A DNA stretch of 63,411 bases, filler included, from Reticulomyxa filosa (Eukaryota > Protista > Foraminifera), in the NCBI GenBank assembly GCA_000512085.1. It is 19 parts of 19 records of this genome, joined end to end, with 100 filler letters (N's around TTAATTAATTAA, not from the genome) between each part and the next. Parts side by side here need not be neighbours in the genome. Positions count along the whole stretch, not along the records: positions 35,528 to 46,469 come from ASPP01029490.1; 18 more parts are not named here. One strand, given 5' to 3'. The notes below the pieces were generated by a model. The model saw only the letters and a program-made list of their open reading frames with translations, was not told the DNA's origin and did not search any database. Positions 1,572-46,469 of this stretch are shown piece after piece. The position numbers were made by a program, and so were the translations under genes. The stretch's first letter is position 1, and each line of letters begins with the position of its first letter.

Positions 1572-1671
1572 NNNNNNNNNNNNNNNNNNNNNNNNNNNNN
1601 NNNNNNNNNNNNNNNTTAATTAATTAANNNNNNNNNNNNNNNNNNNNNNNNNNNNNNNNNNNNNNNNNNNN
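1572..1671. other. Artificial contig linker N44-TTAATTAATTAA-N44 (first of 18)
   Basis: Identical 100-nt linkers with stops in all six frames start at 1572, 2770, 4229, 5597, 6912, 9522, 10817, 12929, 18622, 31884, 34112, 35428, 46470, 49495, 51985, 55663, 58318 and 59499. This is an assembly concatenation artefact. Confidence 0.98.
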
Positions 1672-2904: not shown

Positions 2905-2943
2905 AACCATATACATATGCATATACATATACATATATATATA

Positions 2944-2978
<35 letters not shown>

Positions 2979-2980
2979 AT
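2905..2980. repeat. (ATATGT)n/(TA)n microsatellite inside a probable intron
   Basis: Directly visible alternating purine-pyrimidine tandem repeat downstream of a minus-strand CAG|GT donor at 3006/3005. Confidence 0.85.
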
Positions 2981-3005
2981 GACCGGAAAAAAAAAAAAAA
3001 AAAAC

Positions 3006-7035: not shown

Positions 7036-7066
<31 letters not shown>

Positions 7067-7072
7067 AAAAAC

Positions 7073-9359: not shown

Positions 9360-9521
9360 CAGTAGAATGCAAAGTAAAGTTGACACCTAAAACGGCACCT
9401 TATAGAAATGATTGATTTTCTTCATGAAAAAACAACATTCAGACCTAATTTTTTTTTAAAAAAATATCTACAAATCGTGTACTTTTTAAATATCATTTTG
9501 GTTTTTTATTACATCTTTCCT
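9360..9521 (+). mobile_element. Tc1-family MITE, left terminal inverted repeat (truncated by contig end)
   Basis: TA|CAGTAGAATGCAAAGTAAAGTTGACACCTAAAACGGCACCTTAT...GATTTTCTTCATGAAAAAACAAC matches 36857-37000 and the reverse complement of 37240-37367. Confidence 0.75.
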
Positions 9522-9835
9522 NNNNNNNNNNNNNNNNNNNNNNNNNNNNNNNNNNNNNNNNNNNNTTAATTAATTAANNNNNNNNNNNNNNNNNNNNNNN
9601 NNNNNNNNNNNNNNNNNNNNNTTTTTTTTTTAACACGGATTGAGTGATATCCAGAGTGCAAAGAAAAAATGGAACTTTGGCCAAATCAATTGGAATTCGA
9701 GCGTCGTTGCAAAGTAACCTTCTTTTGAAGTAGTCTCTTTATGAGTCGGAGTTGGAAAGTTCGACTCACGACAAAACAAAATCAAAACAACAGGAAATGA
9801 GAACGAATGTAACACTACTGTTTAAGTATGGCAAC

Positions 9836-10786
9836 ATGTCCCAGCCAAAGAGAACTAAAATAAAGATAATACAATGGCTGAAATCAAATGCGAAAATTCA
9901 TCCGGAGCTTGAGTTTTTAGCAAAAGACGACGAAGCCAAGAATAAGATGTTGATGCAAATTATAGAGCATACAGCGGACTGGTACCTTCAGCAAGATGGA
10001 GTCTTCGTTCAAATAAGGTGTGTTTGATATGTACACACATATAAAAGGACACTCGAAACAACAATTTTTTTTTTTTTTTTTTTTAAAGCAGCAATGTGGG
10101 GGGACTGGACCTAGCGCAAGTATTGATGACATTAGAGATTGAAAGCCTTCCACAACGTGGCTATCAAAGAGAAATATTGGAGCGAGCCAAAGAAAAGAAT
10201 GTGATTTGTTATATGCCCACCGGTTGCGGTAAAACCAGAGTGGCCATTGGCTTAATTTTGCTTGTTTTGCAGCGGACCAGTGCATGGATCAATGATCCAC
10301 AACAGAAGAGAACGTGGGTGATTTTTTTGGTTCCAACGACAAATTTGGCCACTCAACAATTGAACAAAATAAAAGTTAAAAAAAGGGGTTACACTTTTTT
10401 TAGTGAGTTCTCTGACACGTATAAAAAAAAAAAACTTTTCGATAATGTTGTTGTTGTACAAACTACAAAGTTGCATACAAGTATAAACACAACATTTCAA
10501 CGAAAAAATTTAGGAGGCATTTAACGGTTGCGTTCGCGCGCAGAGGATAATTGGAGAGGATGGGCCGGACGATTGGGACGTGAACACGTGGAACATGATG
10601 TTCGAGCCTAACGACGTGTTTGTAATGACCCCCCAATGCTTGGTCAACATCCTTTCCAGGGGTATCAAGCAAATTCAAGACTTTAGTTTGTTGATTTTTG
10701 ATGAATGCCACCATGTGAAAGGCAAAGAGAAAAAGAACGGACACCCTTATTTCCAAATTATGCAACAATACCATCTCACGAAAAAG
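9836..10786 (+). CDS. Dicer-like DExD/H-box helicase (Hel1 domain), 5' part, 3 exons
   Basis: After splicing (introns ~10018-10088 and 10375-10513): PQRGYQREIL, MPTGCGKT (Walker A), IFLVPTTNLATQQ, DWDVNTW, VFVMTPQCLVNIL, LLIFDECHH, HPYFQIMQQY. This motif set is characteristic of Dicer/RIG-I-like helicases and closest to Dicer. RNase III domains are not in this contig. Confidence 0.8.
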
Positions 10787-10916
10787 TTAACCATTTTTTT
10801 TTTTTTTTTTTTTTTTNNNNNNNNNNNNNNNNNNNNNNNNNNNNNNNNNNNNNNNNNNNNTTAATTAATTAANNNNNNNNNNNNNNNNNNNNNNNNNNNN
10901 NNNNNNNNNNNNNNNN

Positions 10917-10950
<34 letters not shown>

Positions 10951-11110
10951 TAATAACAATGAATTTCTTTTTCGTGTGGACTCAACAAAACAACGTACAT
11001 ATGAATTTTATATTTATCAATTGACACCTTGTTTATTGGAACTCACTTGCTTTACACAACAATGTTTGTTCTATTATCCCTTCTTTCATCACTGCACTTT
11101 TTTTTTGCAG

Positions 11111-11226
11111 AATATCTTTTCTTGCTTGGATTTTTTCGAAGCGCGCCAACAATGGCTGCATTGTGTCCATGCTTTGGATCGTTTCAATGATGTGTTGGCT
11201 CTGCTTTTACGTCCTCCTTCTTTGCA

Positions 11227-11261
<35 letters not shown>

Positions 11262-11442
11262 ATCGTCAAATACTATCTTGCATTGACCTCCATTTATTTT
11301 TGAAACACTTTCTATGGCTCTGCATGCGAGTTGCTTGTATTCACGGATTCGCCCCGGTCCCACAATATGGATGTCTCGATACTGTTGCGGGTACTGTAGA
11401 GGCTCGTTCGTCTGCATCTTCACTTTCTTCTTCGTCTTCATT

Positions 11443-11488
<46 letters not shown>

Positions 11489-12427
11489 CCATCATCATTA
11501 TCTTCTTCTTCTTCTTCTTCTTCTCCCTCTTCCTCCTCGTCATTCGCGTGTTTGCAGTCTTCGATGAATGGCATTTCAAAATGTGATCTGCACATTGCAC
11601 ACAGCGTGTTGATAAACATATTGCTAGTGAATCGTCAATGGCTCCCTTCATTACTCATCACCAAACTGCGATCGCACGTCCGCGATCTGTTTGTGTTCAT
11701 TCGTTTGCTGAAAATACTCGGCCAAGACCTGAAGCATTTGTTTCAAATGAAGCTGTTGCAATGCGACAATCTGACTTTGTTTTATCAGATGATCTACGAG
11801 ATCAAACGAAACGTCCTGTCTTCTCATCCGTCTCAAGACCACGTCGACGTAGTCGCGCCTTTCCGTACTCCAAATCAGTTTGTCAAACCAACCCAACTCG
11901 ATATCTCATCTTCGACTTCCGATCAAACTGTCGTACAGTCTGAGGAAGACGCTTTGTCTTCGCTAACCCATTTTCGAAGAGACCAACTCCAAGAGCTATT
12001 CCAAGACACAATGTCTACTAAGCCAACGCCTACTATTGATGAATCGATTTCGCCACTTGTTCTTACCGATGTGCTGCAACAAGTGAACTTTTCTTGTCTT
12101 CTTGCCCCTTTTTCATCATCATTGCCATCACAGCAAACACCATCATTATCACAACAAATATCGTCATTACCACAGCAAACACCATCGCAACTGCAGTCAC
12201 AATCATCACAACCACTTCCGACTGGAGAAGATTTGCGTTGCTTGTTAAGTGTGTTAGGTGACATACCCGAATTGAATCAGAGCAATGACAATAACAATGG
12301 CAATGCAACACAAGAGAAAAAAGCAAATAAAAAACCAAAGTTGCCCAATTTTAATGATCTCAGAGCTGATGAAGACATCGACAGAGGGAAAAATTGGACT
12401 AATGTTGTCAATTTGAATATGTTTTGA
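11111..12427 (+). CDS. 3' exon of a hypothetical protein with His-Arg, poly-Ser and SQQTP repeats
   Basis: Long open frame after a TTTTTTGCAG acceptor at 11110, with (CATCGT)n, (TCA)n and (TCT)n coding microsatellites. No family recognised. Confidence 0.55.
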
Positions 12428-13097
12428 AACTTTTCATTTTCACAAGCTTGAACTTGTTTCCCTCTTGTTAACAAACACGAGCAAACCGCTTTTATTGTTT
12501 TTTATTTTCGAACAAAATTAATTTAAAAAGAATCACATAGTATTTTCTACAAACTATGCAATCTTTCTACGAGCGATCCACTCCTATTTAGCCAAACGTA
12601 AAGGGACTGAACTTCTAAAAACTGAGTTAATGAATGTCAAAGCTTCTATGTAAATGTTAAAAAATGAGATTCTGCGTGTTTTTAAATTTTTTGTTGAAAG
12701 AATTGTAAACCCATGAAAGGTCAAACTGGACTGTTGGAGGGAGTAGAGCTGCAAGAAAGAGAAAAAAGGACTTACAAAGTAAGTGGAGAAAGTTAAACAC
12801 GTAACCCAAATAATTTTTTTGTTTTATCCCCTTTATTAATTATTTATTTCTTTAATGTATAATTTTGTGTGATCAATAAATAGAAGGTATTGGCAATGTA
12901 CATGCAGCGATTTCCCGTAAACGTAAACNNNNNNNNNNNNNNNNNNNNNNNNNNNNNNNNNNNNNNNNNNNNTTAATTAATTAANNNNNNNNNNNNNNNN
13001 NNNNNNNNNNNNNNNNNNNNNNNNNNNNTTTTTTTTTTGCAATGCTATTGTACTAGAAGACTACGACAGCATCCATTCGCAGCATAGCGTAGACGAA

Positions 13098-15256
13098 ATG
13101 GAGCACGATCTGGCGAAACTGCAACCATCTCTAGAAACAGAAGGAGGAGTGTATTCAAGACGCGGTAGAGGTATGGTATCAGATGGCTATGACACTCTGC
13201 TCTCTCCAGAGCAACAGCAACAGCAACAGCAGTTCGCACATGCGCATTCCAAACAATCTCGACCATTGCCGACCATGCGTTCCTCTTTGCATCCTCGAAT
13301 GCCTTATCATCCAACTGCAGCGATGCGAGTGGCACCGGGATATGACAAGTCCAACAAAGCATATCAGCCATACAAGTGACTTTATATGTATTGTATGTGC
13401 ATTTGTGCAATTTTGTGTATTGTTTAAAAAAAAAAAAAAGAATTTGTGAATGAATATGTGGGAAAAAACAAAGTGACGAAGAAGAAAGCAACTTGGTCTT
13501 GCGCTATCAAGCCGCGATGACGCAGACGCAGTACGACTATTGGAAAGCGCAGAACCGCCAGTTGGGTGCGTTTGCGTTTGGCGCGGGACAGGCTCCGTTT
13601 CATGGGACAGTAGTGCCTGCACACCATTATTCGCCGTATGTGGATATAATGTCTCCGAGTGGGACTATCTCAACAACAACAACAACAACAACAACAGCAG
13701 CAATGCCATTTCATGGATTCAGTCAATCTCCGACAGACACAACAATGACGCCGATAATGCCGCAAAGCGGAGCGCGCTCAATGTCCCGCAACTTTGGGTC
13801 GCCCAAGCCTGAGGACATCGATCCCGAGTTTACGAATCGCCCCGAGTTTGTGCGCTTCCAACGCTGGGAGTTGCTGGAGTCGGCCAAGCGCTGGCTCCCA
13901 GGAGAAAGCACCATCATCATGTGGAAAGGCTTTTGCTATGTCATCGGCGCGCCCATTCATATGGGCATGAATGGACATATTCACTTTTGCTATCGCTACA
14001 AGCTGCCCGAGTCTGCCACTGACGACGAAGATACAGCTGCAACTGCAAATCAAAGTCAGGCTGAATTCGAAACAACAACAGCGACAACAACACGTGAAGA
14101 AAGTCACTCTTCGATCAATTTCGGTCGTCTCGCCGCTTCCAAATTCACTAAAAAAGACGTCGTCACGCTTGCAGCCAAGATTGTGCCCAACACGTCAGCC
14201 TTTGCCCGAGAAATCGTGATATTACGAGACTTACAAGTTATTTTGTGCAATTTTTGGAAACTATTTGTATTTATTTGAACATAAATATATAATACATATA
14301 CGTATGCGTATATGTATTATATATTTATGTATTTTGTGTATTTATGTGTGTGTACATATACATACATATACGTATATACACATATATATATATGTATAAC
14401 GTATACGTATACGTATATATATATATATATTACGTATACGTAGGATTGTGAGAATATAACCACATTATATGACGTGCTCGAGTCGAAACGTACGTTGATA
14501 TCAATCCTGGAACTTGCCAAGTCGGACGTGCACCACTTCTTTGTCGGACGCGAAGCGAGTAGACATGGATGGTCATTGGAGAAGCCAGCAGTGCGCGAGG
14601 CGTTTGCACGCATGGTAGTGACGAACGCCGTGCAGGGCCTGAAGCAGATGCACGACAAAGAGTACTTGCATTGCGACCTGAAGTCGCTGAATGTGCTGCT
14701 ATACATTTACAAGAGTCAGTACTCGAGACGTCAAGGAGGGGTGTACATGAAGGCCAAGTTGACTGACTTTGGACACTCGTCCAAAGGCAAAATACGCACA
14801 GCCGAGGCCACGTTTCGAAATGGAATGGCTCGTGTTGGAACTGCTGGCCACGTGGCGCCGGAGTTGTTCAAGGAGGGCACGCCGTGTGATTTCAAGATTG
14901 ACATTTGGTCTTTGGGGATTGTCATGTTCAGCATGTTGGTGCCTGCGAAACTACCCTTTGGGGAGTACACGAGCTTTGACGGCTTGAAGAAAGCCTACGA
15001 CGCTTTAAACAAAATGAACCCTTGGAGTAATCAACACAGACCCAAGTGGTGGACCGATTTTGAGCGCCTGTCTCCTGAGGCACGCGATTTGATCCTGTGG
15101 ATGACGCGCTTCAATCCCAATGAAAGGCCCACTGGAGAACAGATCCTCAAGCATCCCTGGTTCCAAATCTCCATGGGCAAGTTGAAACCTGGACAATATC
15201 GTCCCAAATTAAAATATGTCGATATGCTATGTTCCTCGTCCATTGCCCAAGAGTAA
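13098..15256 (+). CDS. Ser/Thr protein kinase (CAMK-like fold) with Q/T-rich N-terminus, 3 exons
   Basis: Introns at ~13376-13473 and ~14237-14443. Motifs: LAAK, REI, HCDLKSLNVL, LTDFG, GTAGHVAPE, DIWSLG, LSPEARDLI, RPTGEQILKHPWF. Confidence 0.9.
14280..14443. repeat. Intronic (TA)n/(TATACG)n purine-pyrimidine repeat
   Basis: Nearly the whole 3' half of kinase intron 2 is TATACG/TATATA/TGTA repeats, running up to the TAG acceptor. Confidence 0.85.
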
Positions 15257-15782
15257 GTAAAGCCTTTTTTTTATTGTGGCCTTGTCGCTTTTTTTTTTTT
15301 TTTTTTAATAATCGCATGTCTCATTATTTTGTCTTCTTTTTTTAAAAAAAAAAAATCGAGTTTTTTGTTGAACATAACAGCTTCTCTACTCTTATGTTTT
15401 TGTGTCGGCCAAAATTACTCTTTTATTATTTTTTGCTCGGTTGATTTGTTATGTTTGTTGTTTTTTTCGTTTGTTAACAAGAAAGCTTTTTTGTTATTCA
15501 CACCTTTGGTGTTTTGTAGTTTTTAGAATGTGAATTTTTTCTAATCTGCCTTTTTGTTTTTTATTACAAAAACACTTCGCATACTGTCTTTTCAACAATT
15601 TTTCATATACATTGGTAATAACAGTAAAACCTCATTTGAGAAAAATTTTTATTGTGTTTGCTCTTTCATGCACAAAACATATCAATAATGCAAAAAATAT
15701 CATCTCGTCAATTGATAACGTACAATAAAGTTCTGTTTTCTTAAAAAAAAAAAAAAAATCTCTCCTTTCATCTCTTGTAACA

Positions 15783-16499
15783 ATGTCCCAAGCGTCAGAC
15801 AAGGATAATATAAGCAATGAAGAAGAAAAGGTGGATTTGAAAAAAAAAACTGAAGACTTGCAAATGATCAGGACTTGGAAAACACGACAGTGGGCTCACA
15901 ATATTAAGTCCGACCGCTTGCGGGACTTACTTTTGGACAAGGACAAATCGAAAGATGTGGTAATTGTCGATTGTCGTGTCAAAAACAAAGATTTTGAAGG
16001 AGGCAATATAAAGAATGCAGTGCACGTGGACTTTAACGAATTTGACGTAAAAGTGGTGGATATAATCAAAGCTTATCACCACAAGCCATTTATTGTATTT
16101 CATTGTATGTACAGTCAAGTTCGTGGTCCATTATGCTGTCAAAAGTATTCTCTTTTGTGCCGAATATTATGCACCCACGCGCAAGACAAGGACAAGAGCA
16201 AAAGTATTACAGAGAAATTGAAAACGAGCGTGAATGAAGTCCATACTTGGAAGCAAAATGAAAACAACAACAAAATGATCGAAAACTTTGTCAAGGAAAT
16301 GACTCCTCTTATTACAAATGAAACATTGATCAACAATTTGTGGGAACAAAATGTCTATGTATTGGAAAGGGGATTTCAAAATTGGGTGACATTGCATCAT
16401 GCTGAAGAAAATTTGGTTGAAAATTTTGATCATAAGTATTGGGATAAAGTACATGATGAAGCACTTGGACCACTTTTCTGGCACAAAGATGATTGGTAA
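15783..16499 (+). CDS. Cdc25-like rhodanese-domain phosphatase / arsenate reductase (Acr2/Ych1/Ibp1 type)
   Basis: Intronless 238-aa ORF with VVIVDCR, DFEGGNIKNAVH, catalytic FHCMYSQVRGP (HCx5R) and VYVLERGFQNW. Confidence 0.85.
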   Translation: MSQASDKDNISNEEEKVDLKKKTEDLQMIRTWKTRQWAHNIKSDRLRDLLLDKDKSKDVVIVDCRVKNKDFEGGNIKNAVHVDFNEFDVKVVDIIKAYHHKPFIVFHCMYSQVRGPLCCQKYSLLCRILCTHAQDKDKSKSITEKLKTSVNEVHTWKQNENNNKMIENFVKEMTPLITNETLINNLWEQNVYVLERGFQNWVTLHHAEENLVENFDHKYWDKVHDEALGPLFWHKDDW

Positions 16500-17100
16500 T
16501 AAACTTTGTTGTTTGGCAGCTGTTTTTGCTTTCTTGTTTTTTTGAAAATGGTAAATACTGAATTTTTTTTGGATTTTCTACAATGTCTTCTTCAAAGTAA
16601 CGATCTCTATCATCAATCAAGGAAGAAATTATGCCAATGGAGAATACTTTATTTTTTTATTGGCAATTGTAATATTCACATTCAAATGTCAATTACAAAG
16701 ATTGTAATAAAAGATCAGCTCATTGTAAACAAATAATTTTATTTACTTTTTGATATCATCGAAAAAATCAAATGAAAGTTATTTAATAAAACAACATTGA
16801 ATGGCGAAAATAAATATTACCAAGTTTATAGATATAAAAGAGCAGCTACAGTATCTTTAAAATTTCATTAGAAAGCAATTCACTGCTCCACAAATGTTAT
16901 TGTACTAAAAATATAAACACATTTAATGTTTTATATTCATTCGTTTGTTTCTTCGTTGAAATTTTAATCAAAAAGGTATTCACTTTTCGTATTAATTGAA
17001 ATTAAAAACGATTAAAAAGGAAAGAAAACAAAAGCAAGAGTTTTGTTTTGTAACACCAGTCCTTGTGTTGAAACTACTTGAAAAAAATTGTCACTCAAAC

Positions 17101-18518
17101 ATGTGGTATTTGATCTCATTTGTATTGTTTCATTTGTTCACCATTCATGAAGCTGCCATTCTTGCAGATGAGGTGACAACTTTGCCAGGATGGGATGGCC
17201 CATTGCCTTCTCGTCAGTTTAGCGGGTTGTTGAACATTCCTGGATCTAATCCTCCACGATATATCACTATTGGCTTGTGTAAGTTTTATTTTTGAAACTG
17301 TGGGCGCAAAAAAAAAAAAAAAACAGTACTAAAATTGAAATTGTTCAAAAAACTTTAGAGAATCGGAAAATAATCCAACCACTGATCCTGTTGTCTGTTA
17401 ATTTCTTCGTGTGTATTTCTGTTGTTTGCTTCACTTGCAAAAAAAACTTTGGTTGACTGGACAAAAAAGTTTGGTTTAACGGAGGTCCGGGAGCAAGTTC
17501 TTTGTTGGGATATTTTACAGAGCAAGGACCATTTAATGTGAACGATCAATCAGTGCTTATAAACACCACAGAAGTTCCAGTGTTGTTTTACAACAACTAT
17601 ACCTGGTAATATAATTGTGTTTTCTTTTTTCTCAGCTGTTATTTAATAGCAACATTTAAAAGAAAGGGGGGGGAGGGACAGACCACAAGTTAAACAACTG
17701 AACGCACTAGTTTTTTTTAATGTGAAAAGGTGCAAAGTAGCAAATGTGATATTTTTGGAATCACCAGCTGGTGTTGGATTTTCTTATTGCAACGGACAAG
17801 AAGGTCCAATTGACAGTTGCCCAGATTGGAACGACACGAATGTTGCTCAAGATAATCATGTAGTGCTTCAACAGTTTTTTAAATACTATCCAGAATACAC
17901 GGAAAATGATTTCTATATTGCTGGAGGTAATTGTTTGTGCACTATTGTGTGTCTCTATTCTGTAAACTGTACACATGGAGAAAATTGAATAAATCCGAAA
18001 CGATCAAACAAAAAAGAGTCTTATGCTGGCATTTATGTTCCCACGTTGGTCATGCAAATTGAAGCTGACTCAAGTGGCATCCCACCATTGAAAGGAATTG
18101 CAGTTGGTGATGGGTGTATGGGCATTGGTGGACAAGTTTAGTTGTTGTTTTTTTTTTTTTAAATGTGTGTTTCACCCCTTATTTTTTTTCGTTCTTTCCT
18201 TCTCTCTCCAAAAAAAAAAAAAAAAAAGAGGTAGCGTTTTGGCTATTACTACGTTGAAAAATGAAGGGGGTAACTGAGAGTTAATAAAAGAAATGAGAAA
18301 TCAAAACAAAATACAAAATAAAAAAAGGGAGGATGCAACTTGGATGACGCAGCCAATTTCTGGCAATTTATGTGGGGACATGCACAATTGTCCAACGATT
18401 TGTATAACAGTATCTTATCGTCTTGTGGCTCGTGTTTAGAGTGGGGAAACTGTTCGTCGTTGTCAACGTGCATTAACTATCAAAACCAAGGCTACATGGC
18501 CCTGGGTGGATATAACAG
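17101..18518 (+). CDS. Serine carboxypeptidase (peptidase S10), 5' part, multi-exon
   Basis: Signal peptide, [57 protein letters not shown], catalytic [11 protein letters not shown] (spanning an intron) and LKGIAVGDG. One 1-nt frameshift near 17265; truncated by the contig end. Confidence 0.9.
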
Positions 18519-18807
18519 TGCAGTCAAAAAAAAAAAATAAATATATATATGTATATGTATATATTTTTTAATATTCCTTTTATTTGTTGTTTCACAAACA
18601 TTTGTGTACAATTCATTTGAANNNNNNNNNNNNNNNNNNNNNNNNNNNNNNNNNNNNNNNNNNNNTTAATTAATTAANNNNNNNNNNNNNNNNNNNNNNN
18701 NNNNNNNNNNNNNNNNNNNNNGTTCTATACCTCCTCCCAAAAAAAAAAAAAAAAATCAAATCAAATGATAAATACATAAATAAATAAATAAATATTGCTT
18801 TTGTCAT

Positions 18808-19265
18808 CTAAACGCTATTCAGTCTCGTTTTCTTTGCAGGAATTGCCAACATGTCAACGTCGATCGGGTGTTCGTGACGCTTGCGATTGCCCATTTGTCC
18901 ATCTTCTTTTTGTTCTTCTGATGATGCATTTAACACATTCCAATTGTTGACTAGGTCTATCAGTGCGTCCACTGACTCCACCAGTGACTAATGTCATTTC
19001 GTGTCACACATAATTTTTTTTTTATTTGTTTGTTTTGCTTGGCTTTTCATCTTTTTTTTTTTTTTTTTGTTGTGTTTCTTCTTTATTTGCATATGCACTC
19101 GGTTTTTGTTCACATCAATGGTGCAACAGTACAAAAAAAATTGTTTTCGCATCGTCGCGCAACAACAATCTTCAGTTTGGGTAAAATGCTCACTTTGTGC
19201 AAAGAGCTCAGATTTTATGTGGGACTTTCTTTCAGTGCCCTGTCTCGAAGAGGAAGTAGACTCAT
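18808..19265 (-). CDS. Possible small two-exon protein with C-terminal basic NLS-like motifs
   Basis: The last exon reads SLVESVDALIDLVNNW...NRKRHEH...PAKKTRLNSV*. The upstream exon needs a 1-nt correction in an A-run. Weak call. Confidence 0.3.
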
Positions 19266-19764
19266 TTAAAAAACAATCAAATTAAATAGTAACATCTTAC
19301 CTTATTTGGGAACAAAGACATCACCAACGTAATCTGACTTTGAAATTATTAATATTTAAAATTTCCGAAGAAATTTCTGTTGACTTAATTTAAAATTTCC
19401 GGGAGCAAACAACTCTTTTTACAAAACAAACTGGTAGCATCACTTGTTTCTTTAATGTTTTTAATTAATGTTAAAAAAAATATGTTTGTACTTGTCAATG
19501 ATTGCCTATTCTTCAAAACGTAACAATCGTTAGCGCGTTACTGAGGAAAACACACGTCAACTATATAGTTGATTGTTCAAAAAAGTCTGCAGCTCAGCTG
19601 AATATTGCAACTTAATCATTCACTTAAAAGCCACATGTACCAGTTTTTAAAGTAGTTCCCTTCAAACACCACCGAAAAAAGTTATTTCAAATTTGTTTTT
19701 TATTCAATACCGAATCTCAAACATTCATGATATATATAAATCAACACATCTTTAGGGTTTAGTC

Positions 19765-20405
19765 ATGACGCAAGAACCAGAAAAGAAGGCGGAAGAAAAA
19801 GAGATTGTCACTATTGCCGTGAAAAGGCGTGGAAGTGTGAGCAAGGAAAAAGTAAAACCAGCGACTTGGGAAGAAATCTTGGGGTGTCGTAATCCCAAGA
19901 CATACAAAAGTCTGCCAAGAGAAGACAACGTTGCACTTGAATATCAAGTGCTTATGTCACACTTGCATGAGACATATCATTCAGTAAAAGATTTCATTTT
20001 GATCAAAAAATTGGGTTCCCAAGCAAAACTGATGCAACTTCTCAGAAACTTTGTATCATATCGGATGAAACAATAGACAAGTCTATTCCTTTGGAACTCT
20101 TCATGCCAAATGATTTTCCGTACTATATCGACCCAGAAATTTTTCATTACGTACTCTGGAATCGTAAAACAGAGTGCGTTACCAACGATAAAGACGAATT
20201 GACTAAATCTGTTGAAAAGTATATCATTCGTGAAATCAAAACTAAAGAAATTTTGGATTGGAAATATAAAACAGACAAAGATAAAGAAAAAATATGTGCA
20301 GAAAATGATTTTGAGTTTTTTTGGTTCGAAAATCCTCAAAGTCATAAAAGTGTACCTGCCCTTTGGCACATTCAAGTCTTTTGGCGGCTTAAAAACATTG
20401 ACTGA
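19765..20405 (+). CDS. DUF3605 / GlcNAc-induced protein 1-like (HIT-like fold)
   Basis: Motifs TWEEI, NDFPYYIDPEIFHYVLW and FFWFENPQSHKSVPALWHIQVF. Two ORFs (19765-20076 and 20091-20405) join if one A is added at GCAAAACTG (~20025). Confidence 0.75.
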
Positions 20406-20876
20406 GCGAGATTTGATGTACACGTAAGTTTTGTTGATAGAGTTTTTATAAACAGCTTATTTCGTACATGCTTCGATTGCAGCGGGGTTGTAGAACCTTT
20501 TTTTGTTTAATATGAAGGAGAGGCATATGCATTGTCTGGTCATTGAAATTTTTTGTAATATACTTTCATTATTATCATTGCTTGCAAAAAAGAGTTGGAA
20601 CTTACGTATTGCTTTCACATGTCGCGATGAAATTAAATATATTTTTTCAATTAAAAACGTTTCAAAGTTGTTTCATGCAATTGGAAAGTAGTGAAAGCAA
20701 AAAAAATATTTGGAGTAGTTTAAGTCTTTGGGAAGGTATGATTTTACTTTAAGTGAAGAAGGCGTTTTACAAAAAAACTTTGAAACAAGAACAAAATCGG
20801 GGTGATTACAAACTCACTTTTGTGAAGATGGAAAAACACAATTTTTTATTGATTTTAACTTGTTTCATGTTCTGCC

Positions 20877-35218: not shown

Positions 35219-35567
35219 CAGTATATTGCAAAAAAGACTGACATAACCAAACGGCAATAAAATGTTTCAATATTTTAAATATCAAAATTTTAAAATGCTA
35301 ATTAAAAATATCAACAATAAAGAAAATTATAAAAAAAAATTTAATATTTAAAAAATACAATATTAGTATATATTTTTTAAAAAATTAGTTTTAAATTTTT
35401 ATTTTTCATGGAGAAAATCGATTTTATNNNNNNNNNNNNNNNNNNNNNNNNNNNNNNNNNNNNNNNNNNNNTTAATTAATTAANNNNNNNNNNNNNNNNN
35501 NNNNNNNNNNNNNNNNNNNNNNNNNNNAGTGCCATTTAGGTATGGCAGTTTTTTTTGCAATCTACTG
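35219..35567. mobile_element. Tc1-family MITE with TA target-site duplication, interrupted by a linker
   Basis: Left end TA|CAGTATATTGCAAAAAAGACTG; right end CAGTTTTTTTTGCAATCTACTG|TA. The interior matches the 37200-37320 region. Confidence 0.7.
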
Positions 35568-35694
35568 TACTCTTTGCTTTGTCTACATACATTATTAGTT
35601 TTTTGCCTTTTTTGTCTAAAGCCAAACAAGTCAAGTTAATTCAAAAGCATAAGAACTGAAAATTTTTTTGTAGTAATATTTTTTTTAGTGAAAA

Positions 35695-36315
35695 TTACCA
35701 TTTGTTAAATCACCTTTTGCCTTTGTACTGCTTGTATTTGCTCTAGCATTAATTAAATTAATTTTGTGCAAGTTTTTTTTGTCAATTTTTTCACATTCTA
35801 ATTCAAATTGTTTCCGAAGTTTTTCTTTTGATCATTTATATATTTTTTTGTTTTCACTATCTACTACAGATTTTCGATTGTGTTCAGGTCTGGAAAATTT
35901 GGATGGAAATCCAATAATTTGATAGCATTTTTCAAACAATTTTTTTACTGTAATTGCTTTGTGTCTTGTGGCATTATCTTGATGAAATGTTCAATCTTCA
36001 TTATCTTCTAAACGCCAATCAATGCTTTTGAGCATTTCGTCACATAGAATTTCTTTGTAAATATCAGCATTGACACCTAAATCAATTTTACACGTATAAC
36101 TAGATCCTAACATTCTAAAGCAAGGATACACAAATTCGTTATTGTACTTTTAACGAACGCAATTTTCTTGGTTTCTTCTCGATAAGTTTTTTAGTCTTGA
36201 CGTCAGCTTCTATTTAATCACATATTCATGACTTACACGAAATTTTTTTGCAACGTTGCGCAAACTCCAACACTGACTCAAGTCATTTGTTAAAATCCTC
36301 AATTAATTTGGCCAT
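35695..36315 (-). mobile_element. Decayed Tc1-like (DD34E) transposase
   Basis: The reverse strand reads WSLRNVAKKFRVS (HTH), VNADIYKEIL, FHQDNATRHKA, LDFHPNFPDLNTIENL and a C-terminal AKGDLT (Tc1 AKGGPTKY-like). It has stops, frameshifts and an internal deletion. Confidence 0.85.
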
Positions 36316-36856
36316 TTTAAAAAAAAAATGATTAATAAACTAAAATATCGAATTATACTGAGCTAAAAAAAAAGAAAAATAAAGTACAAGATATTAAATA
36401 ATTATGAAAGATGTAGCAAAAAACCAAAGTTTGCACTAGCAAGAGGACAAGAATATGCAGAATATTGCAATGAAGAGAATAAAACCGTTTGATGATATGT
36501 TAATGCAAGCGCTTCTGTAAGTACTACATGGACTAGCAAGACACATAGTATTGAGCAAAGAGCCGAAGACATTACTAGAAACGGAAAGGGCACTCCAAGA
36601 AAGCCAAAGCAGATTCAAATATGAAATAAGAGCAAAATGTTAGTCTTGAACGAATTAGTTAATTAATAAAAATTTAGACAAAGTATTCAAATATGGTGAT
36701 ATACACGAAGACAGCGTGAGACAGAATGTGAAAGGCATTTCAAACAAAATATCATAATAATAGTAATATAACATATAAAAATAAAACAAAACATTAAACA
36801 ATACAAATTCAAATACAAACTGAAGAATTATGAGCCGTACAGTACGATTCGAAATA

Positions 36857-37367
36857 AAGTATAATGCAAAATAAAGTTAACACATAAAACAGCATCTTAG
36901 ATATTATTGATTTTCTTCATGAAAAAACAACAATATTCAGACTTAATTTTTAAAAAATATCTACAAATCGTGTAGTTTTTAATTCTCATTTTGGTTTTTT
37001 GTTAAATATGTACTAATTACTTCAACATTTCGTCCTTTATTTTTTTTAGCTCAGTATATTTTGCCAACTTCTTTTTTAAGCATTTTCATAAAGTGCCAAA
37101 TACGTAGATATGTAAAAAAAAATAAGAATGATTAAAAACAAGTATCGAATTTCATGGTTACGACACATTCAAGATTGTCAACTTTTTCTCAAAAAAATTA
37201 ATTAAATATTCAAATTTTAAACAATTTTGAAAGATGTAATAATGATATTTAAAAACTATAACATTTATGTATATTTTAAAAAAATTTGATTAAATATTGT
37301 TTTTTCATGGAGAAAATCAATCATCTTCATAAAGTGCCATTTTATGTGTCAACTTTTTATTCTACTG
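36857..37367. mobile_element. Complete ~510-bp Tc1-derived MITE with ~130-bp imperfect TIRs
   Basis: 36857-36990 and 37240-37367 are inverted repeats; ends are TA|AAGTATAATGCA and ATTCTACTG|TA. Interior 37036-37058 (TTTTTTTTAGCTCAGTATA) matches the sequence upstream of the transposase ATG at 36315. Confidence 0.8.
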
Positions 37368-37872
37368 TATTTTCTTGAATTTTATTCCTACGTACACATA
37401 TAACAAAAAGCTTGTCTTATAAACTTTTTTTAAACAATATTAAAAGAATACCAAATAAAAATGTCGTTCATACAACATACGAGACTGTTGGAGGTTAAAA
37501 CATGTATGCAGTAGCATTGTTGATATTCTCATTTTTATTTGATAGTTTGTGCAAGGTTTCACTCTGCGTCTTCCTATTTTCCGTACCAAAGGTTTTTTTT
37601 TCATTAGTTGGTGAAAATGATGCATTGAACATAGAAGTACTCTAAAAAGGTTAGATCCAAGTGAATGCAAGCTGCTATTTAAATTTTCGCTTTGATCCGC
37701 ATGTATTGTTCAAGTTTGCTCAACGCGTTTTTAGTTTTTTTTGTTATTAATTTCAAATAATGCATGTTAAGAAGGATAAATATTCACCTTTGTTGTGCTA
37801 ATGAAGATGCTTAGGGCATTCATTTATGTTGAATTCTTCTTAACAAAAAAAAACTCGCCTCCCCCTGAAGAC

Positions 37873-39030
37873 ATGGATAAAGTGCAAGATACCGCTGCAC
37901 GCTTGTTGGATTTTTCAGATGGATATAATTTTACGCAGGCGCAATACGCGTTGCAGAAGAAGGATCCTTTGGACTTGGGAGACTTGTCTTTGTGTTATTC
38001 AAACAAGCGTTTGAGTGTGCATTGGACAAAGTTTGTCGGACAAAATGGTGTGATCGACTTGGACGTCGGTGATCTGCTGCACACAATAAAGGAGAGTATT
38101 GCATCACGCTCGCCGTTTCGTACCGACGTGGTGGAATTGGTACAAGGTATTGCCAATCAATTTATGCCAGGCTTGGCAGGCACATTGCCACCTTTTGAAA
38201 CGAATGTATTTTTTCGACCACATTTTGAAGGTTTGTTTGTTTATTTTGAAAAGCATTAACAAAATCATTAAACATTGTTACTCCGAACAAATAAAAAAAA
38301 AAAAAAAAAAGGAATCACAGTTCGGATTTGCGTTAGTGTTTTTCAAAAATTGGAATAGCGTGGAGTTGTTGAATAAAACGTTGCATTTGCCATCTGAAGT
38401 GTTCCAAAACCTTGGCGCGAAATACCCGTTTTCTGCGTTTATAACTCGTTGCGTCCATGACAATATCAGTATTGGCTCGATTCGATGTGGCTTGTTTATT
38501 TCCCAAAATTTGAATGGCAGTCTTTATAGGCAAATAAAAAAAAAAATAAAAAAATGTACGTCCATATATAATATATGTATATGTATATTTTGTTTGTTTG
38601 ATATCACAGCGAATTCAGCATTCGATTTCTGTTTGATAACCGTTTGCATCATCATGCGGTGCAGATTATAAACCAATTGCAGAATGATAAGGCCGCACAT
38701 CCACACCAAGTGAAAAGTACCAAAGGCACTAAGAGTGACGATGCTGAAACGTATAATGACAATACTATGGATAGTCATGAAGGCACAAATGGTCTTCAGG
38801 GACAAAACAAATCCAATCACCCCACCAATACCAACACCAATACTAATGCCAATACTAGTACTCATAAACATTCGGAGAAAACTGTATATGTCCCCTCTGT
38901 TTGTTGTACTCACAAACATTGTTCTCAATGGTACACATTGCCGGCCAAATTGATCATGCCTGCCGCTTGCTTGGGTGTGTTTCATAACATTTTTTATAAG
39001 GCTTCAGGTCTCACAAAAATTAAACTTTGA
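37873..39030 (+). CDS. Hypothetical protein, 3 exons
   Basis: Spliceable frame MDKVQDTAARLLDF...FRPHFE|ESQFGFALVFF...LY|SEFSIRFLFDNRL..., using introns ~38231-38311 and 38530-38609 (GC-AG). No family recognised. Confidence 0.55.
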
Positions 39031-39286
39031 ATTTTTTTAAAAAAGCAAATCCAAACATTCTTATGTCTTGTCTGTATTTCTCTCTTTCTCTTGTTCCATC
39101 CTAACGTCGTTTATCTTCGTCATTAAAATATGCCATCTTTTCATTTTTGATCGTACAGTTGAACTTTTGCAAGAAAAAAAATCTATCGTCTCAAAATGTT
39201 AACGCTTTTTGATTCATTTGAAATAGTGTACAACTGTCCACAACTTCAACTATTGAACATCAGAGCCAGAAATTTTTTTTTTTTAA

Positions 39287-42200
39287 ATGGAAAAACCTCC
39301 CCTTTGGGCAAGTTTCGTTATTAAAATGACAGAAAGAATAAAAGAGAATGATGAAGAAGAAGAACACATATTTTTACATATTTGAAGAACAAAACCAAAA
39401 TAGATAATGAAGAAGCCGCAAAGCTCACATCTTACTTGCGTCGAGAGGAAAAAATAACACAAGGAGAAGATATTGCAATATTGGAGTCACAACAATGGAA
39501 AAAAGTATTTATACACGTAAAATTGGCTCTTATTTCAAAGAAAAAGCTATTGAAAACAGTGAATCAAATGCGTGAAAGTGAAAACGAGAAACTATTGAAT
39601 ATTGACGAAATAATAAACAGCAGATCATCCATACGGTAAATATATATATATGCCAATATATGTTTGTGTTGACAACAATGAGAAAAGGGAACTGGTTGTG
39701 TTTAATAAATACAGACGACAAGAGTACACACAAATTTTGTGCATCAATGACAATATGGCGAATATTATTTTGGGAGTATGTGTTAAAAAAAAGTATCCTT
39801 CATTCGAACGTATGAATGAACAACAAATACAATTAAAACAACAACAAAAAAAAAAGGATAAATTGGTGAGATTCAACTTAAATGATGAAAGATGGAAACA
39901 TTTTGATTTAAAGAGTGGAGATGAGATATTTTGCGAATATTCACTTGAGTCAAACCCAAATGCATCAGATAGTGGGTTGAATGTGAACAGTATTGAATTT
40001 CCTGTGCTTTATCAAGGTGAAGTAAATGAAGATGATGACTCTCAATTTGTATCTGTTCCAGTGCATTGCATAAAACAGGTACTATTACAACACAACACTC
40101 ATACAACAAATGTTTGTAATATCTATTTTGTTAGTTATAGTGTATACCCATGTATATATGTATACATTTGTATGTATATTCGTTTGTTCATTTGCAAAGC
40201 AAGAAACTAAAGCAAAGACTGTGAATGATAGCCAAAAGAAAGAAAAATGGAGGGTTGGAGATAAAGTGGAGTTTCGTTGCAAATATCACAATGACAGTGG
40301 ACTGCTATTGATATTAAAGTCCTGCAGCGAGCTCCTTTGTTTAGCTTTTTTTTCTTTTGCTCAACAAAAAAAAAAAAAGGACTTTTGTTCACGACATGTA
40401 CGTATATTCACACATTGAACCATTTTGCATTTGTATGTTAGACGAAGAATAGGAGATATCAAACCAACTGCGATAGTGACAAAAAAACAAGAAAAGGTCT
40501 CCCACATTTTGAATTGGTTAGAAAATCCTTTCGAAGGTACTATCAAATTTATTTATTTATTTTTTTTTTTGGTCTAAAAATCTGGAGTCTCAAAGAAATT
40601 TGTGTGTATTACAGAAAAAGTTGATCAGACCGAGTATGAAGACATGAATTTGTCGGACCTCATCGGCCTATACAAAGACCAATATAGTTGTTCTTCTTAT
40701 GGAAATAAGAATGACGACAAATTGAAATGGCTGAAAACGCAGATAACATTGGAAGCGATGAAATACGTGGCGAAAGAATGCATAATTGAAGTGCGCAGTA
40801 TCCCAAACGAATTAATAGAACAGGTAATTCGAAATCTTAAGTATTGCAGTGAGCCATTGTCCATGACTGACTCAGACAATTCCAACATATCAAATGCAAT
40901 CGTGTTGTTGAAGAGATTCATTGAAAAGTATCATAATGCAAAAGAAGAAGAAGATTTGGCCAAATTGCAAAAAGAACTGGAGCAAATAGAAGTCCTTCCA
41001 ATATTGACTGAACAACAAACTTCAGATAATATGTACTGGATTGTTCCGAAACACGTGACAAGTTCACGAAGACTACGAATCTATTTGTATTGTCCAGAAT
41101 GCATCAAACCCAAAACTGATCGTGCTCGGAGTGTCTTTTTCCTTAATATACCTAGAGGTACGTCTTCTTCTTTTTCTATTATTTATAACGGATAGCCTTC
41201 TTATTTATTTTAAATAAATGACAACAGCCGATAAGCGATATCCATTACAATTGGCAAAAGAGGGCATTCTTTGGTTATATTGGAGTGACTTCCGAGTTAC
41301 TTCCAATTCTCAATTATTGTGCAGTATATTCAATCAAGAAAGAAAGATTGCAACTGCCACCATTTCTGCCTCTTCTCAAGTCGTTGTTGTGGAAGAACAG
41401 TCGCTGCAGTCCAAATCGAAACGAAAAAGTGCGGCCATATTAAGCTACGTGATGGGCACATTAACGTCCAACACCAAAAATATAGAGGTTTTCGAACATT
41501 TGATTCGCGAAATCAAGGACGAGCCATCTTTTTGCTTTGCTGTAGCTATTGTCAAAGATTTGAAAATGCAACTTGCTCCCTCCGAATCTGACATTAGTGA
41601 CGCATCGGCTGATATCACTCCAAACTTGGATCAACTCGATGCGGACTCTAAAACAAGTATTAATACGCATTCTTTTTTTTTTTTTATGTCTTTTTGTTTT
41701 TTTTTGTTAATGTAAAAAAAAAAGGACAAAAATAAAGAAAAAAAAAAAATGAACAATCATAAATTCAGGTGTATCAAGCACTATTTGTATGCATACTCTG
41801 GAAAGAGTGGGATATGAAACAACACCTATCTGCAAAACGATTTTTTGTTGTGATAAACACTCTTTTCAAAGAAAAGCCAGCAGAACAACTGCACCTTTCT
41901 ATCCAAGAGATCTTAATGCATAATCTCTCTGCTTTTGATAATGATGATGGAATTGCATTGTATGATAATATGGAAAAAGCTTGTTCTGCATTTGATAAAT
42001 TTATGCTAATTCCATGTTTCAATTACTTGGCCTTATCAAAGGTCGCTCAACAAAATGAATTTAAATATTTCAGTAAAATGCTGCAAAACATTGACTTTGA
42101 AACCGATGAACCACAGACGATCGACGAAAAGGTTTTGAAAGAAGTTATTACCTTAGACTTGCGCTTGAGCAACAACACTAAATCCTCTCCTTGCATATCT

Positions 42201-45200
42201 ATTGGAAGCTATTTGATCACTTTATTGCAATGCTATCAACACACTGAATTTATTGTACAATTATTACTCGACAATATCAACGAGAGAATTGAAAATCAGA
42301 TGCTGACTCGGGTATTGCAGTTGATATGGAAAGTTTTGTTTTCGTTGTTTGTTTGTGCATGTACACATTTATCCATTGATTTATCCTCAACAACTCTGTA
42401 TTATCTTGTCCACATTCGACAATAAATACACGATATATAACAAAGAAAAGTGAAGGGAACAAAAAAACGAGTGAAAAGGATAGTTTAACAAACTATATAT
42501 TGCAATTACTCTTAAAAGATAAAAAAAAGCGTGCCTATTGGATTGAGTTATTGGCAAATTCGAGTAGGATAAGTGATGACAAACTCTTCTCGAAATTACT
42601 CCGTGATTCACTCAAAAATTGGCTAGGTGGAGAGGAGGACGAGGAGAACGTTTCTGAAAATGTGTCATTGCACTCCAAAGTAATTGAATTGATGTCCTCT
42701 GATGCATTTGCAAAGGCCAAGCCGTTTCATTCATATCTGATTGAAAGCGTGAATGACAAGTATAAAGAATTGCGGTTGAACAATAAAAAATGGACCTCGG
42801 AGGAAATCAACATATGTGCAAAAGTCAATTGGGAGCTGTGGCCACAAGTAATTAAAAACATCAACAATATTCCAGATATTGAAGACTTGCACGAAAAGAA
42901 TGTGAGTGACAGACTTCGTTTAAGTTTAGGCTACTGCTTTGAATGTCAATTGTGGTTCGAACAAGAAAACATAATGCAAACAAAATTGACCACTTTTTTC
43001 GGCAAAGTATTAACAAAGTTGGTCACAAATCACAAACTTCTTTCTATTCATGTTTACAAGTATTTAGTGGAGCATCGAAAAAAAATTGAAGATATTTCCT
43101 CTCATTGTTCAAAAGACTTAAAGTCATCGTTACAAAGATTGGATGAAATCACGAATGATTATACACAATCCTCTGAATTGGTCCATATGTTCAGACGGAT
43201 TCAAGATTATTTGTTTGAACACGATTTGTCGGATCGATTGAAGGAGCTTGGACAACAGAGTGATGATTGGGAAGCTCAAATATTTGTAAATATGAAAGAG
43301 AGTTATAAAAATGAACTCCAACTATTGAAATTGTATCAACAAAAAATGAAAAATATATTGCAACGGGAAGAAAGTTTGATGTTTCAAAAAATGTGGAAAC
43401 ACTTCAATTTACAATATAAATTGTGTCAATATCAAAAACCTTTTTCTATTTTCGACAAAGTATTCAATAACGTGAAAGACACATGGAAAGATTTCAAGCA
43501 GGTTCATATCACTCCTTTTTTTTTATTTTGGTAAACATATTTTGCCCTGAATTCAACTTGTGGGTGTATAGAGCCTTCAAAATGGGTCACTCAAGTACCA
43601 AGATTTGAAGTGGATATCCATCAGTTATTCACACGACCCGGACGGAATTAAAAAATATTTAATAAACGAAATGGAGCATTTATTTCCAGCGTATAAAGAT
43701 GAACAGCGACAAGAGATTGTAATTAGCATTGGAGAGAAGTTGAAAGAGGAGATTCATTTGAAAGAGCAGCTCCAGTTTTGGATCAAGTTGAAAAAAGTAA
43801 CAGAACAAATGAAAGAGTATCATCCTTGCAAAGATAAAATTAAAGAGGATGAAAAATGGCAAAAATATGTGAAAGCATTAGCGCAAATGACAAACACAAA
43901 TGAAGATATTTTACTTGAGCAGGCATATCAATGTCGCAGTGTTTGTATTGAATATCTGAATGAAGATACCAAATTCTATATGGTCATTGATCTCTTTGAT
44001 GTCTTGAATCGTTGTAAAGATCAATTAAAAATATTGGCAGAAAATCAAAATTTCAATGATGCCGTGCACTTTGACAACACATTGAATGTATTGAGCAAAA
44101 GTAAACATCAAAAGACTCAGGATTTGGCCACTTACTTGAGAGATGTGAATCCCACGATGCAAAACACATTGTGGAAATGTACATTGGAAGATATGACTAG
44201 CTTAGCCAAAGCAATATTGAAATTGCACTCCAAAGGTCAAGAATTTACCAAAATGATAAGCAAATGTTGTGACATAAACTTGAATACAATTTCTACTTTG
44301 GTCAACGAGGCAGACAAAATTCGAACTGAAACAAGTTTGAAACAATTGAAAGATGCAATGGACACTGGAGAATGGCAATTTGCAAGTTACCAGGAAGTGT
44401 TGAAAGGAAAGAAAGAAGAATTGGTTTTGAAAACAAACAATGCGACTTGGCATTGTGAAGAAATTGGAGAAAATATTGATCGTGTATTGCTCGGAGCAGG
44501 AAAAAACGAGTTGAGAGAAATTAAAACTGTCATTCAACAATTTGAAGAATGCAAGGATATTAGTTTATACCGAATTGAATTTTGGAAAAAGGGAGGAAGA
44601 ATTGATATTGAAAATGATGAAAAAGGAGGAATTCAGAATGATGATAAACCATTGAAATTACCTGTGCATTTGCAAATAGATGAGTTTGAAAAATGCAAGG
44701 AACTTTGGAAACAAAGATTAATGGAATGGAAAAAACAATGTTTCGAATTACGAGAAAAATTTCCAGCACTCAATTATTTCTGTTTCAATCAAGTGCATTT
44801 TTTAATCAAAAAAATCAATCAATTGAATATATCCAACTGTCCTGGTCGTGCCATTAAAGCATCCAAATATATCAAACCCTTTCTTCAAAAAATTCATTGT
44901 GATGTCACTGATCATGATGTCGATAATGTATTGAAAGATTGGATAAATTTTAATCTCAGAGATCTTGATCAACATAATATTAATGATAACAATAATAATT
45001 TTAGACAATGCAGAGATTCAATTGCAAAGTTTGGACAAATCCTTCATCGTGTATGGATTTCATCTCAACATAATTGTGTGGACGAAAAACCATTTTCCAT
45101 TGGATTGTATGCAGGCAAACCCAATTTGATAATTGGATCTAAAGAATTACAGTCTAAAGAATTACGGTCTAAAGAATTGCTGTTTGGATTACTTGGTTTA

Positions 45201-46469
45201 TTTGAATCCCAAAGATTCATCCCACGAGCAGAACATATTTTGATTTGCAACGAAACAACAACTGAAGAAGATATTGCCTGTTTGATATTCCGGGCCATCA
45301 CCAATCACAAAAGAATGCCATTAACAACAAAAATAGCAAAGACAACTGATTTAATAACAATAACCGAAACAAATCACAAATCAGCGAAACCATTGTATTG
45401 TTTGGTGTATCCTGAAAAGTTAACACCCATGACATTGAATCAAATTTGTCAGGATATCTATGAATTATTGTTGAGTGATATTCGATTGGAACAATTAAAG
45501 AATAATTTTTATACGTTTGTAGTTCTGTCCTCTAACCAAGAAAACCCTTTGTGCAAAATTCTTGCCCCATTCAAAGTTATTCCTCACAGTTTCTTATTCG
45601 AAACGCTTCCCAATCAAATATTGTCTGGACTTTATCATAATCAATGGACTAACAGCCGGGTACATGATATTAGTACAGAGCCACCATGGATACAGTTGTA
45701 TACATCGGAAAAAGTTGCAATGGGAAAAAGTACACTTATTCAAAGAGACATTCAAAGAATTCGAGAAATACACAAAACCAAGACAATCCATGAAATTTGT
45801 ATTGCATTTAACAGTAAAGATATCGATTGGATAAAAATAATGGATAGATTTTGGAGCTACCACCCTTGTTCCAATGATGTGAAAGATGCAGACATTGACG
45901 AAGAAAATACATTGATCATTTATCATTTGAACATTTCATCTTGTGTTTCAAAACGTATCAATGATTTTCTATTTGAATTGTTGTTTCTGCAACATATCAA
46001 TTCCAATTCCCAAATGTCCCAATGTTTCCATGTCAATCCCAATATGATCTTTTTAATTGAGATTCCTTCCACTTTGAATCGTCCAGATTTCACTGTATCA
46101 CCTAAAAAATGTTTTTATTTATTCTTTTCCACTGTCAAATTTCCAACTGTTGAAGTATCTCCTCAGAATAACAAATTTGAATTTGGAAAAGAGGCACAAT
46201 ATGTTATCAAATGGATGCAAGAATTTTTCAATGGAAATTTTAAGTTCTTTCACACTATTTTTGTTTTTCCCACCAAAAAAACAAAAGATGTTTGTATATG
46301 TATTTTCAAGGCGCTCTGAAAAAAGACTACAAGATATTGATCCTGATACCATGCTCGACCTTGAAAAGGGTAAAATGAGAAGATTTATGGAAAAACATTT
46401 CAATGAAATAGCGAATTCAAGTCCCGCACATCAGCGTTCTTTTTTCAAATATTTGTATCAACAATTTCT
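39287..46469 (+). CDS. RNF213/mysterin-like giant AAA+ protein, 5' part (SAM-like + 2 cold-shock/OB-like domains + helical stalk + first AAA module)
   Basis: Multi-exon gene with a 904-aa exon containing LREKFPALNYFCFNQV, IPRAEHILICNETTTEEDIACLIFRA, LYCLVYPEKL, LYTSEKVAMGKS and IYHLNISSCVSKRINDFLFELLFLQHI...FLIEIP. These are colinear with remembered RNF213 blocks (YLNFYTAEQL; LPTYDEVLLCTPATTFEEVALLLRR; VASERAGVGKS; LFHLDVTSSV...FLFKLLILQYL...YIVE). Truncated by the contig end. Confidence 0.8.

Follow-up and report, generated by a model that had tools for sequence, protein, structure and literature searches.

The DNA analysed here (hereafter, the window) is a stretch of 63,411 nucleotides (nt) composed of 19 joined parts from 19 records of the foraminifer Reticulomyxa filosa (assembly GCA_000512085.1). 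Positions 35528-46469 of the window come from contig ASPP01029490.1, are AT-rich (GC 0.22-0.41), and carry on the plus strand a gene that runs from an ATG at 39326 to the contig edge at 46469, with 11 exons separated by ten GT..AG introns of 70-121 nt. The locus very probably belongs to a gene family specific to R. filosa, with 20 or more members that encode giant RNF213-like AAA+ proteins. The ancestral architecture of its subfamily was, with a similarly high probability, a SAM fold, two OB barrels, a helical arm and linker of ~1,400 residues, and an RNF213-type AAA ring. The arm and linker would correspond to ~900 residues in exons 5-9 and the first ~500 residues of exon 10.

Gene structure and state of the window copy

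The gene model rests on a comparison of up to eight aligned paralogous copies: L001 (ASPP01009103), six more head-bearing loci, and the window itself. L001 is collinear with window positions 39313-45229, starting 13 nt before the ATG, at 75% nucleotide identity. A first-pass annotation of the window, made from the sequence alone, had proposed a set of exon joins, which agree with the model, and had quoted peptide segments, all of which were found in the sequence where it placed them. The features of the gene are as follows.

39326-39385 (+): start ATG and 19-codon stub, ending at TGA 39383-39385; in L001, L002, L003 and L006, the corresponding ATG shares the frame of exon 1
39355-39635 (+): exon 1 body, predicted SAM-fold five-helix domain, open in the frame of 39355; donor GT at 39636
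39636-39714 (+): intron 1
39715-39775 (+): exon 2, predicted OB1 strands 1-2 (strands E113-131 of the model of paralog P0013); acceptor AG kept in eight copies
39776-39856 (+): intron 2, 81 nt
39857-40078 (+): exon 3, predicted OB1 strands 3-5 and OB2 strands 1-2; donor GGTA kept in all copies
40079-40199 (+): intron 3
40200-40338 (+): exon 4, predicted OB2 strands 3-5; frame disrupted at 40296 by the private -1 deletion
40339-40441 (+): intron 4
40442-40536 (+): exon 5, short linker after OB2; GT and AG kept in all copies
40615-41130, 41228-41656, 41769-42332 and 42446-43501 (+): exons 6-9, helical, collinear with proteins P0006, P0007, P0010 and P0031
43572-46289 (+): exon 10, linker-like helical part followed by AAA1 and a putative AAA2; 906 codons without a stop
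46290-46368 (+): intron 10
46369-46469 (+): exon 11, cut by the contig edge; 94% identical to residues 861-892 of P0002

Every exon of the model is open in its own phase, and the intron phases are compatible. In introns 1-5, the GT and AG are kept in every copy that covers them, with the sole exception of the intron-1 donor, where the conserved GT is AT in the window copy and an alternative GT 6 nt upstream keeps the frame. The intervals between the splice sites differ in length and sequence among the copies. In the paralog alignment, the third codon position is the most variable and the second usually the least variable throughout exons 2-6; this pattern is weak in exon 1, and no such periodicity was seen in the introns. 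The ratio of nonsynonymous to synonymous substitution rates (dN/dS) between the window and L001 is 0.40 in the head exons (exons 1-4) and 0.34 in the body, so these are conserved coding sequences under purifying selection and not chance open reading frames (ORFs). Intron 2 of the window is itself in frame and free of stops, and its retention would do no more than insert a loop rich in Lys and Gln into OB1; the homologous interval of L001 contains stops.

Three frame-breaking indels were found in the window copy, and they are called private because every other aligned copy lacks each of them. The first is a +2 insertion in a GAA run (~39353-39364), after codon 9-13, which is absent from L001, L002, L003, L005 and L006; because of it, reading from the ATG at 39326 now stops at the TGA at 39383-39385, which leaves the SAM-like ORF, open in the frame of 39355, lacking a start codon. 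The second is a -1 deletion at 40296, within exon 4, which L001, L003, L004, L006 and L007 read in one frame. The third is an extra G (+1) at ~41643 in exon 7, 13 nt before the donor, absent from L001, L003 and L010. Since they sum to +2, the indels do not compensate one another; all other exonic indels between the window and L001 are multiples of three. Judged by its sequence as assembled, the window copy cannot encode a SAM-OB-OB-AAA fusion. The first-pass annotation had read through the gene as encodable and overlooked the three breaks; two of the peptides that it quoted together, WRVGDKVEFRC and WTAIDIK, lie in different frames on either side of the deletion at 40296.

Given its three private frame breaks, the window copy is either a recently inactivated paralog or mis-assembled. 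That it is intact and functional, with all three indels being assembly or sequencing errors in a 2014 draft that may have collapsed reads from near-identical paralogs, we consider a serious possibility, if one somewhat short of an even chance. Exon 10 forms an unbroken 906-codon ORF in DNA of 33% GC, the dN/dS values are well below 1, the remaining exonic indels preserve the frame, as does the shifted intron-1 donor, and two of the three indels sit in short repeats (GCGG versus GCG, and the GAA run). Isolated frame problems, as expected of a noisy assembly, also occur in other copies: in L001 (start of exon 3; ~4114), in L004 (start of exon 3), and in L003 (exons 1 and 7; ~3624). Against this, the deletion at 40296 is located outside any homopolymer, and the three indels are unique to the window copy and leave an uncompensated shift. 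Across the family, the breaks may mean either that genes evolving by birth and death include recent pseudogenes or that the consensus is wrong where paralogs were collapsed.

The AAA core and its kinship with RNF213

The 904-residue ORF at 43605-46319, which covers most of exon 10, matches only R. filosa proteins (50-81% identity), and alone gave no significant match in the PDB or Pfam, RNF213 included. A profile of 12 paralogs also failed to find RNF213 in the PDB, because the conserved columns were diluted in it. A focused profile, consisting of residues 441-904 of window exon 10 and five paralogs, yielded nine PDB matches at E≤10. All nine are RNF213, the best with an E-value of 1.9e-12 over two collinear stretches. 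The aligned parts comprise a motif around GKPNLII, a Walker A sequence AMGKST, which aligns with GVGKSL of the mouse protein, and the strand LIIYHLNIS, which aligns with mouse VIFHIDIS and has Asn where mouse RNF213 has Asp. In the window, these parts are located as follows.

45084-45308 (+): AAA1 start motif, profile match to RNF213
45717-45734 (+): Walker A AMGKST, assigned to AAA2, profile match to RNF213
45912-45938 (+): Walker-B-like LIIYHLNIS, profile match to RNF213

To place these elements in mouse numbering, the offset was estimated from the lysine of the AAA3 Walker A, which we take to be K2387. The second aligned stretch has its Walker A ~240 residues after the stretch with the AAA1 start. 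In mouse RNF213, AAA1 starts at residue 1775 and has no Walker motifs, and AAA2 binds ATP but is inactive (PMC7311170). With the estimated residue offset, the first matched stretch of the window gene fits the start of AAA1, and the Walker A ~240 residues further on fits AAA2. Judging by these motifs, AAA1 of the R. filosa proteins appears degenerate and AAA2 appears to keep its Walker A, and the paralogs have a canonical Walker A, GETGCGKT, at AAA3. An in-frame 15-nt tandem repeat (45138-45178, plus strand, 2.7 copies, SKEL units) lies just after the AAA1 start motif; it adds ~10 residues and is absent from all paralogs aligned over the region.

The paralogs extend the comparison past the contig edge. 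P0002, which is 81% identical to exon 10, matches mouse and human RNF213 with an E-value of 3e-16 over three collinear stretches, and the match ends in the GETGCGKT Walker A of AAA3. This motif lies ~200 residues past residues 861-892 of P0002, i.e. the window ends ~200 residues before AAA3. In P0043 (52% identity to the window here), the match to RNF213 has an E-value of 4e-83 and covers the AAA1-2 region as well as ~730 residues that begin at the AAA3 Walker A.

It could be argued that the core belongs to another family with six AAA modules in a single chain, such as dynein or midasin, and that its likeness to RNF213 is a superficial resemblance of P-loops, particularly as Pfam recorded only weak generic matches (AAA, AAA_5, AAA_7) in the paralogs. 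We regard the probability of this as practically negligible: the profile search yielded RNF213 chains only, with dynein and midasin never appearing among the PDB matches, and the aligned stretches extend outside the P-loops and occur in collinear order, over as many as ~730 residues in P0043. The RNF213-like character of the AAA region, which the first-pass annotation had claimed and for which it had named dynein and midasin as the competing matches, is thus borne out, as is the order that it described: after the long helical region comes an RNF213-type AAA1, with the putative AAA2 behind it.

The overall layout also appears to be that of RNF213 (mysterin; mouse 6TAX, human 7OIK and 8S24): a giant single chain with a helical arm and linker preceding a dynein-like AAA ring, in which the AAA1 start, the Walker A of AAA2 and the Walker-B-like strand can be aligned. 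The distance from the start to AAA1 is ~1,700 residues, compared with 1,774 in mouse (PMC7311170), and the helical region of exons 6-9 sits where RNF213 has its N-arm.

The N-terminal head

The fold of the head was modelled on the stored paralog protein P0013, whose identity is 62% to window exon 1 and 60% to the window. The AlphaFold2 model, built with an alignment of 29 rows, contains five helices (residues 4-96) with a predicted local distance difference test score (pLDDT) of ~97, the value also reached over residues 10-100. In an exhaustive structural comparison, the best neighbours of these helices were Sla1 SHD2 (Z 8.4), the SAM domain of ASK3 (Z 7.6) and the N-terminal domain of LEAFY (Z 7.0), and CASKIN2, SAMD5, SHIP2, p73, SARM1, Ste50, tankyrase, BICC1 and PHC3 were among the further whole-domain SAM neighbours; at least 14 SAM or SAM-like entries were found in total. 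Exon 1 is thus predicted to fold as a SAM-type five-helix bundle, similar to the ~70-residue bundles of ASK3, SARM1, tankyrase, Ste50, Sla1 SHD2 and the LEAFY N-terminus (Z 5.5-8.4, root-mean-square deviation 2.1-3 Å). Unlike known SAM domains, however, it has no counterpart among the Pfam SAM models: none of window exon 1, L001 exon 1, P0013 and P0014 matched PF00536 or PF07647 at E≤10. Hence, we call it SAM-fold only.

The first barrel, OB1, is five-stranded in the P0013 model (pLDDT 71-87). Its structural neighbours are a NigD-like protein, Rho, the cold-shock domains (CSDs) of Unr, the exosome S1 domain and Lin28, and Foldseek weakly agrees. The second, OB2, for which exon 3 supplies strands 1-2 and exon 4 strands 3-5, was modelled from residues 172-258 of P0023, a stored protein in which the two exons are joined. 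This model also has five strands (pLDDT 80), and its neighbours are the CSDs of RNase R (Z 7.3) and Unr (Z 7.2 and 6.9), CRHSP-24 (Z 7.1), and further the RNase II CSD, CspB and Lin28. The nearest neighbours of both barrels are CSD/S1 domains, with Z-scores of 6-7.3, and on these models both repeats are predicted to fold as OB barrels, with the conserved signature W-x(5-7)-G-D-[EK]-[IV]-x-[CF]. In this respect the head resembles the tandem CSDs of Unr/CSDE1 and the CSD or S1 domains of RNase R, RNase II, CRHSP-24, Lin28 and the N-terminal part of Rho. In contrast to those domains, its exons gave no match at E≤10 to Pfam CSD (PF00313) or S1 (PF00575), and the cold-shock RNP1 and RNP2 RNA-binding motifs were not visible by eye in the head alignments; because Pfam matches are lacking, the repeats are called OB-fold only. 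The pattern W-x-V-G-D-K-V had initially suggested Tudor or SH3-like barrels. Such an assignment is extremely improbable, since the likeness to a Tudor motif is one of appearance by eye only, both models show the OB strand order, and the top 50 structural neighbours consist almost entirely of OB folds (CSD, S1, ribosomal S17, OB of RsgA-type GTPases), with neither Tudor nor SH3 among them. For the second repeat, the Tudor/SH3 reading was ruled out by the fold searches.

Therefore, of the SAM-like segment and the two cold-shock/S1-like repeats proposed in the first-pass annotation, the folds held up in the paralog models, whereas the family labels found no match in Pfam. An ESM Atlas model and Foldseek gave independent, weak support for the folds of the head, and a shape search of the ESM Atlas with the SAM plus OB1 model returned no two-domain look-alike.

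Several observations weigh against this reading of the locus. NCBI annotates the head and the body as separate genes at L001, L003 and L006. Pfam and NCBIfam scans of every window exon gave nothing above noise, and all splicing of the window gene is deduced from comparative evidence only. The folds are those of paralog proteins 60-75% identical to the window copy and not of its own joined sequence, and the Z-scores of the head (6-8.4) are middling by the calibration of the tool, although the lists of neighbours are homogeneous. The private frameshifts in several copies could mean that the assembly is unreliable for this family. Finally, no RING C3HC4 pattern and no Cys/His-rich stretch were found at 5300-20700 of locus L010, and the last exons of that gene have no PDB or Pfam match, so that an E3 activity is hypothetical.

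Of these points, the annotation of two genes deserves particular attention, as it would make the SAM and OB exons a separate small gene upstream of an RNF213-like one. In its favour, there are two models, head and body, at each of three loci, and P0007 begins at an ATG inside exon 4. Such a split, however, would cut the OB2 barrel in two; the small head-gene models end by reading into intron 3, and in L001 only 69 nt separate the head model from the body model. Moreover, other NCBI models unite what is split here: P0016, P0017, P0018 and P0023 join exon 3 to exon 4, and the SAM exon and the body form one model in P0022 and in P0031. In L009 and L010, the SAM exon is linked directly to the body. 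On the 30-kb contig of L010, the arm, the linker and the AAA core come after the SAM exon (5303-5596) in the same orientation, in a locus of 15 kb that is uninterrupted up to 20561, and NCBI cuts this gene (5444-20561) into four models of 324, 914, 1,461 and 1,756 residues. These observations argue that the split between head and body is an annotation artefact, and we consider two separate genes very unlikely. The single head-body gene envisaged in the first-pass annotation consequently stands at the level of the family, by virtue of the joined models and L010, but not for the window copy, which is frame-broken.

An N-terminus of a SAM fold and two OB folds has not been described for animal RNF213. 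The mammalian protein has at this position a disordered stretch and a CBM20 domain (PMC11549300, PMC7311170), in agreement with the remark in the first-pass annotation that animal RNF213 begins with neither SAM nor cold-shock domains. The CBM20 domain is under strong positive selection, and its deletion abolishes the recruitment of RNF213 to pathogens (PMC11549300). No CBM20-like match appeared in the fold comparisons of the R. filosa head.

Family, output module and possible role

The AAA1-2 region is matched by at least 23 distinct R. filosa proteins, and a word search with it gave no match outside this species. P0013 was run by HMMER against 1.84 billion representatives, which gave 27 matches. 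Two of these are low-complexity and are the only ones found outside R. filosa; every other match that was looked up belongs to R. filosa, and all remaining ones align to P0013 in BLASTP. In total, at least 24 (about 25) R. filosa clusters carry the head domain, and the RNF213-like genes thus number 20 or more, unlike the single gene of mammals. The head is not uniform: in L009 (2717-6343) and L010 (5303-5809), the helical body comes directly after the SAM exon, and no OB exon is present. Since these two loci form a subfamily without OB exons, the composition of the head varies between subfamilies, while SAM and body stay joined throughout.

The first-pass annotation had suggested looking beyond the contig edge for further AAA modules and for RING or RZ E3 domains. 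Among the paralogs, the AAA3 Walker A was found, and AAA5 and AAA6 were not identified; in the full-length paralog L010 no RING was found, which is a difference from RNF213. For RZ, there is a weak lead at 18152-19198 of L010: this segment has only ZnF_RZ clusters as language-model neighbours (score 0.90, 191 of 256 features), and a C..H...C..C stretch is visible in its translation, ~700 residues before the end of the gene, while Pfam PF20173 gave no match at E≤10. The segment is possibly a degenerate RZ-type zinc finger, a lead that comes from the language-model neighbours only.

In mammals, where it exists as a single copy, RNF213 has attracted attention as an immune E3 ligase and as a Moyamoya disease factor, and its fast-evolving N-terminus is a suspected site of pathogen recognition. 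By analogy with the mammalian protein, the AAA core of the R. filosa family may act as an ATP-regulated switch, while the head, which takes the position of the rapidly evolving CBM20 domain, could provide self-association through the SAM fold and ligand binding through the OB pair. The mammalian parallel is suggestive of an immune role; nucleic-acid binding and SAM polymerisation would likewise be attributed to the family by analogy. It is conceivable, but on balance unlikely, that R. filosa keeps a birth-and-death repertoire of RNF213-like machines whose exchangeable heads (SAM, or SAM and two OB folds) serve ligand recognition and clustering, as a means of cell-autonomous defence that operates without RING, possibly via an RZ-type finger. 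Among known proteins, SAMD9 and SAMD9L are comparable in domain content only, being large NTPases of innate immunity with an N-terminal SAM domain and an OB fold. They differ in having a STAND P-loop instead of a six-AAA ring and in the C-terminal position of the OB fold.

In our literature search, no paper was found that links RNF213 with Reticulomyxa or deals with RNF213 in protists. The foraminifer contrasts with mammals in that an RNF213-type AAA core has been expanded into a large family, with SAM-only and SAM-OB-OB heads and apparently no RING. If the reading given here is correct, the AAA chassis of RNF213 would be much older than animals, the N-terminus of RNF213-like proteins might be regarded as a swappable module, and the family would supply natural variants with which to find out what parts of RNF213 are indispensable.

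Some minor observations concern neighbouring genes. Upstream of the window gene, a 154-codon ORF (37795-38259, plus strand) occupies the only GC-richer stretch (0.36-0.41) on that side; it has no Pfam or NCBIfam match and may be an exon of a neighbouring gene. The L010 gene (region 219-22080) is flanked by a TPR-repeat gene upstream (2553-4607) and a WD40 gene on the minus strand downstream. In L007, a gene of 587 residues with a weak match to the Schlafen AlbA_2 domain (1045-3339) lies directly upstream of the head copy P0023.

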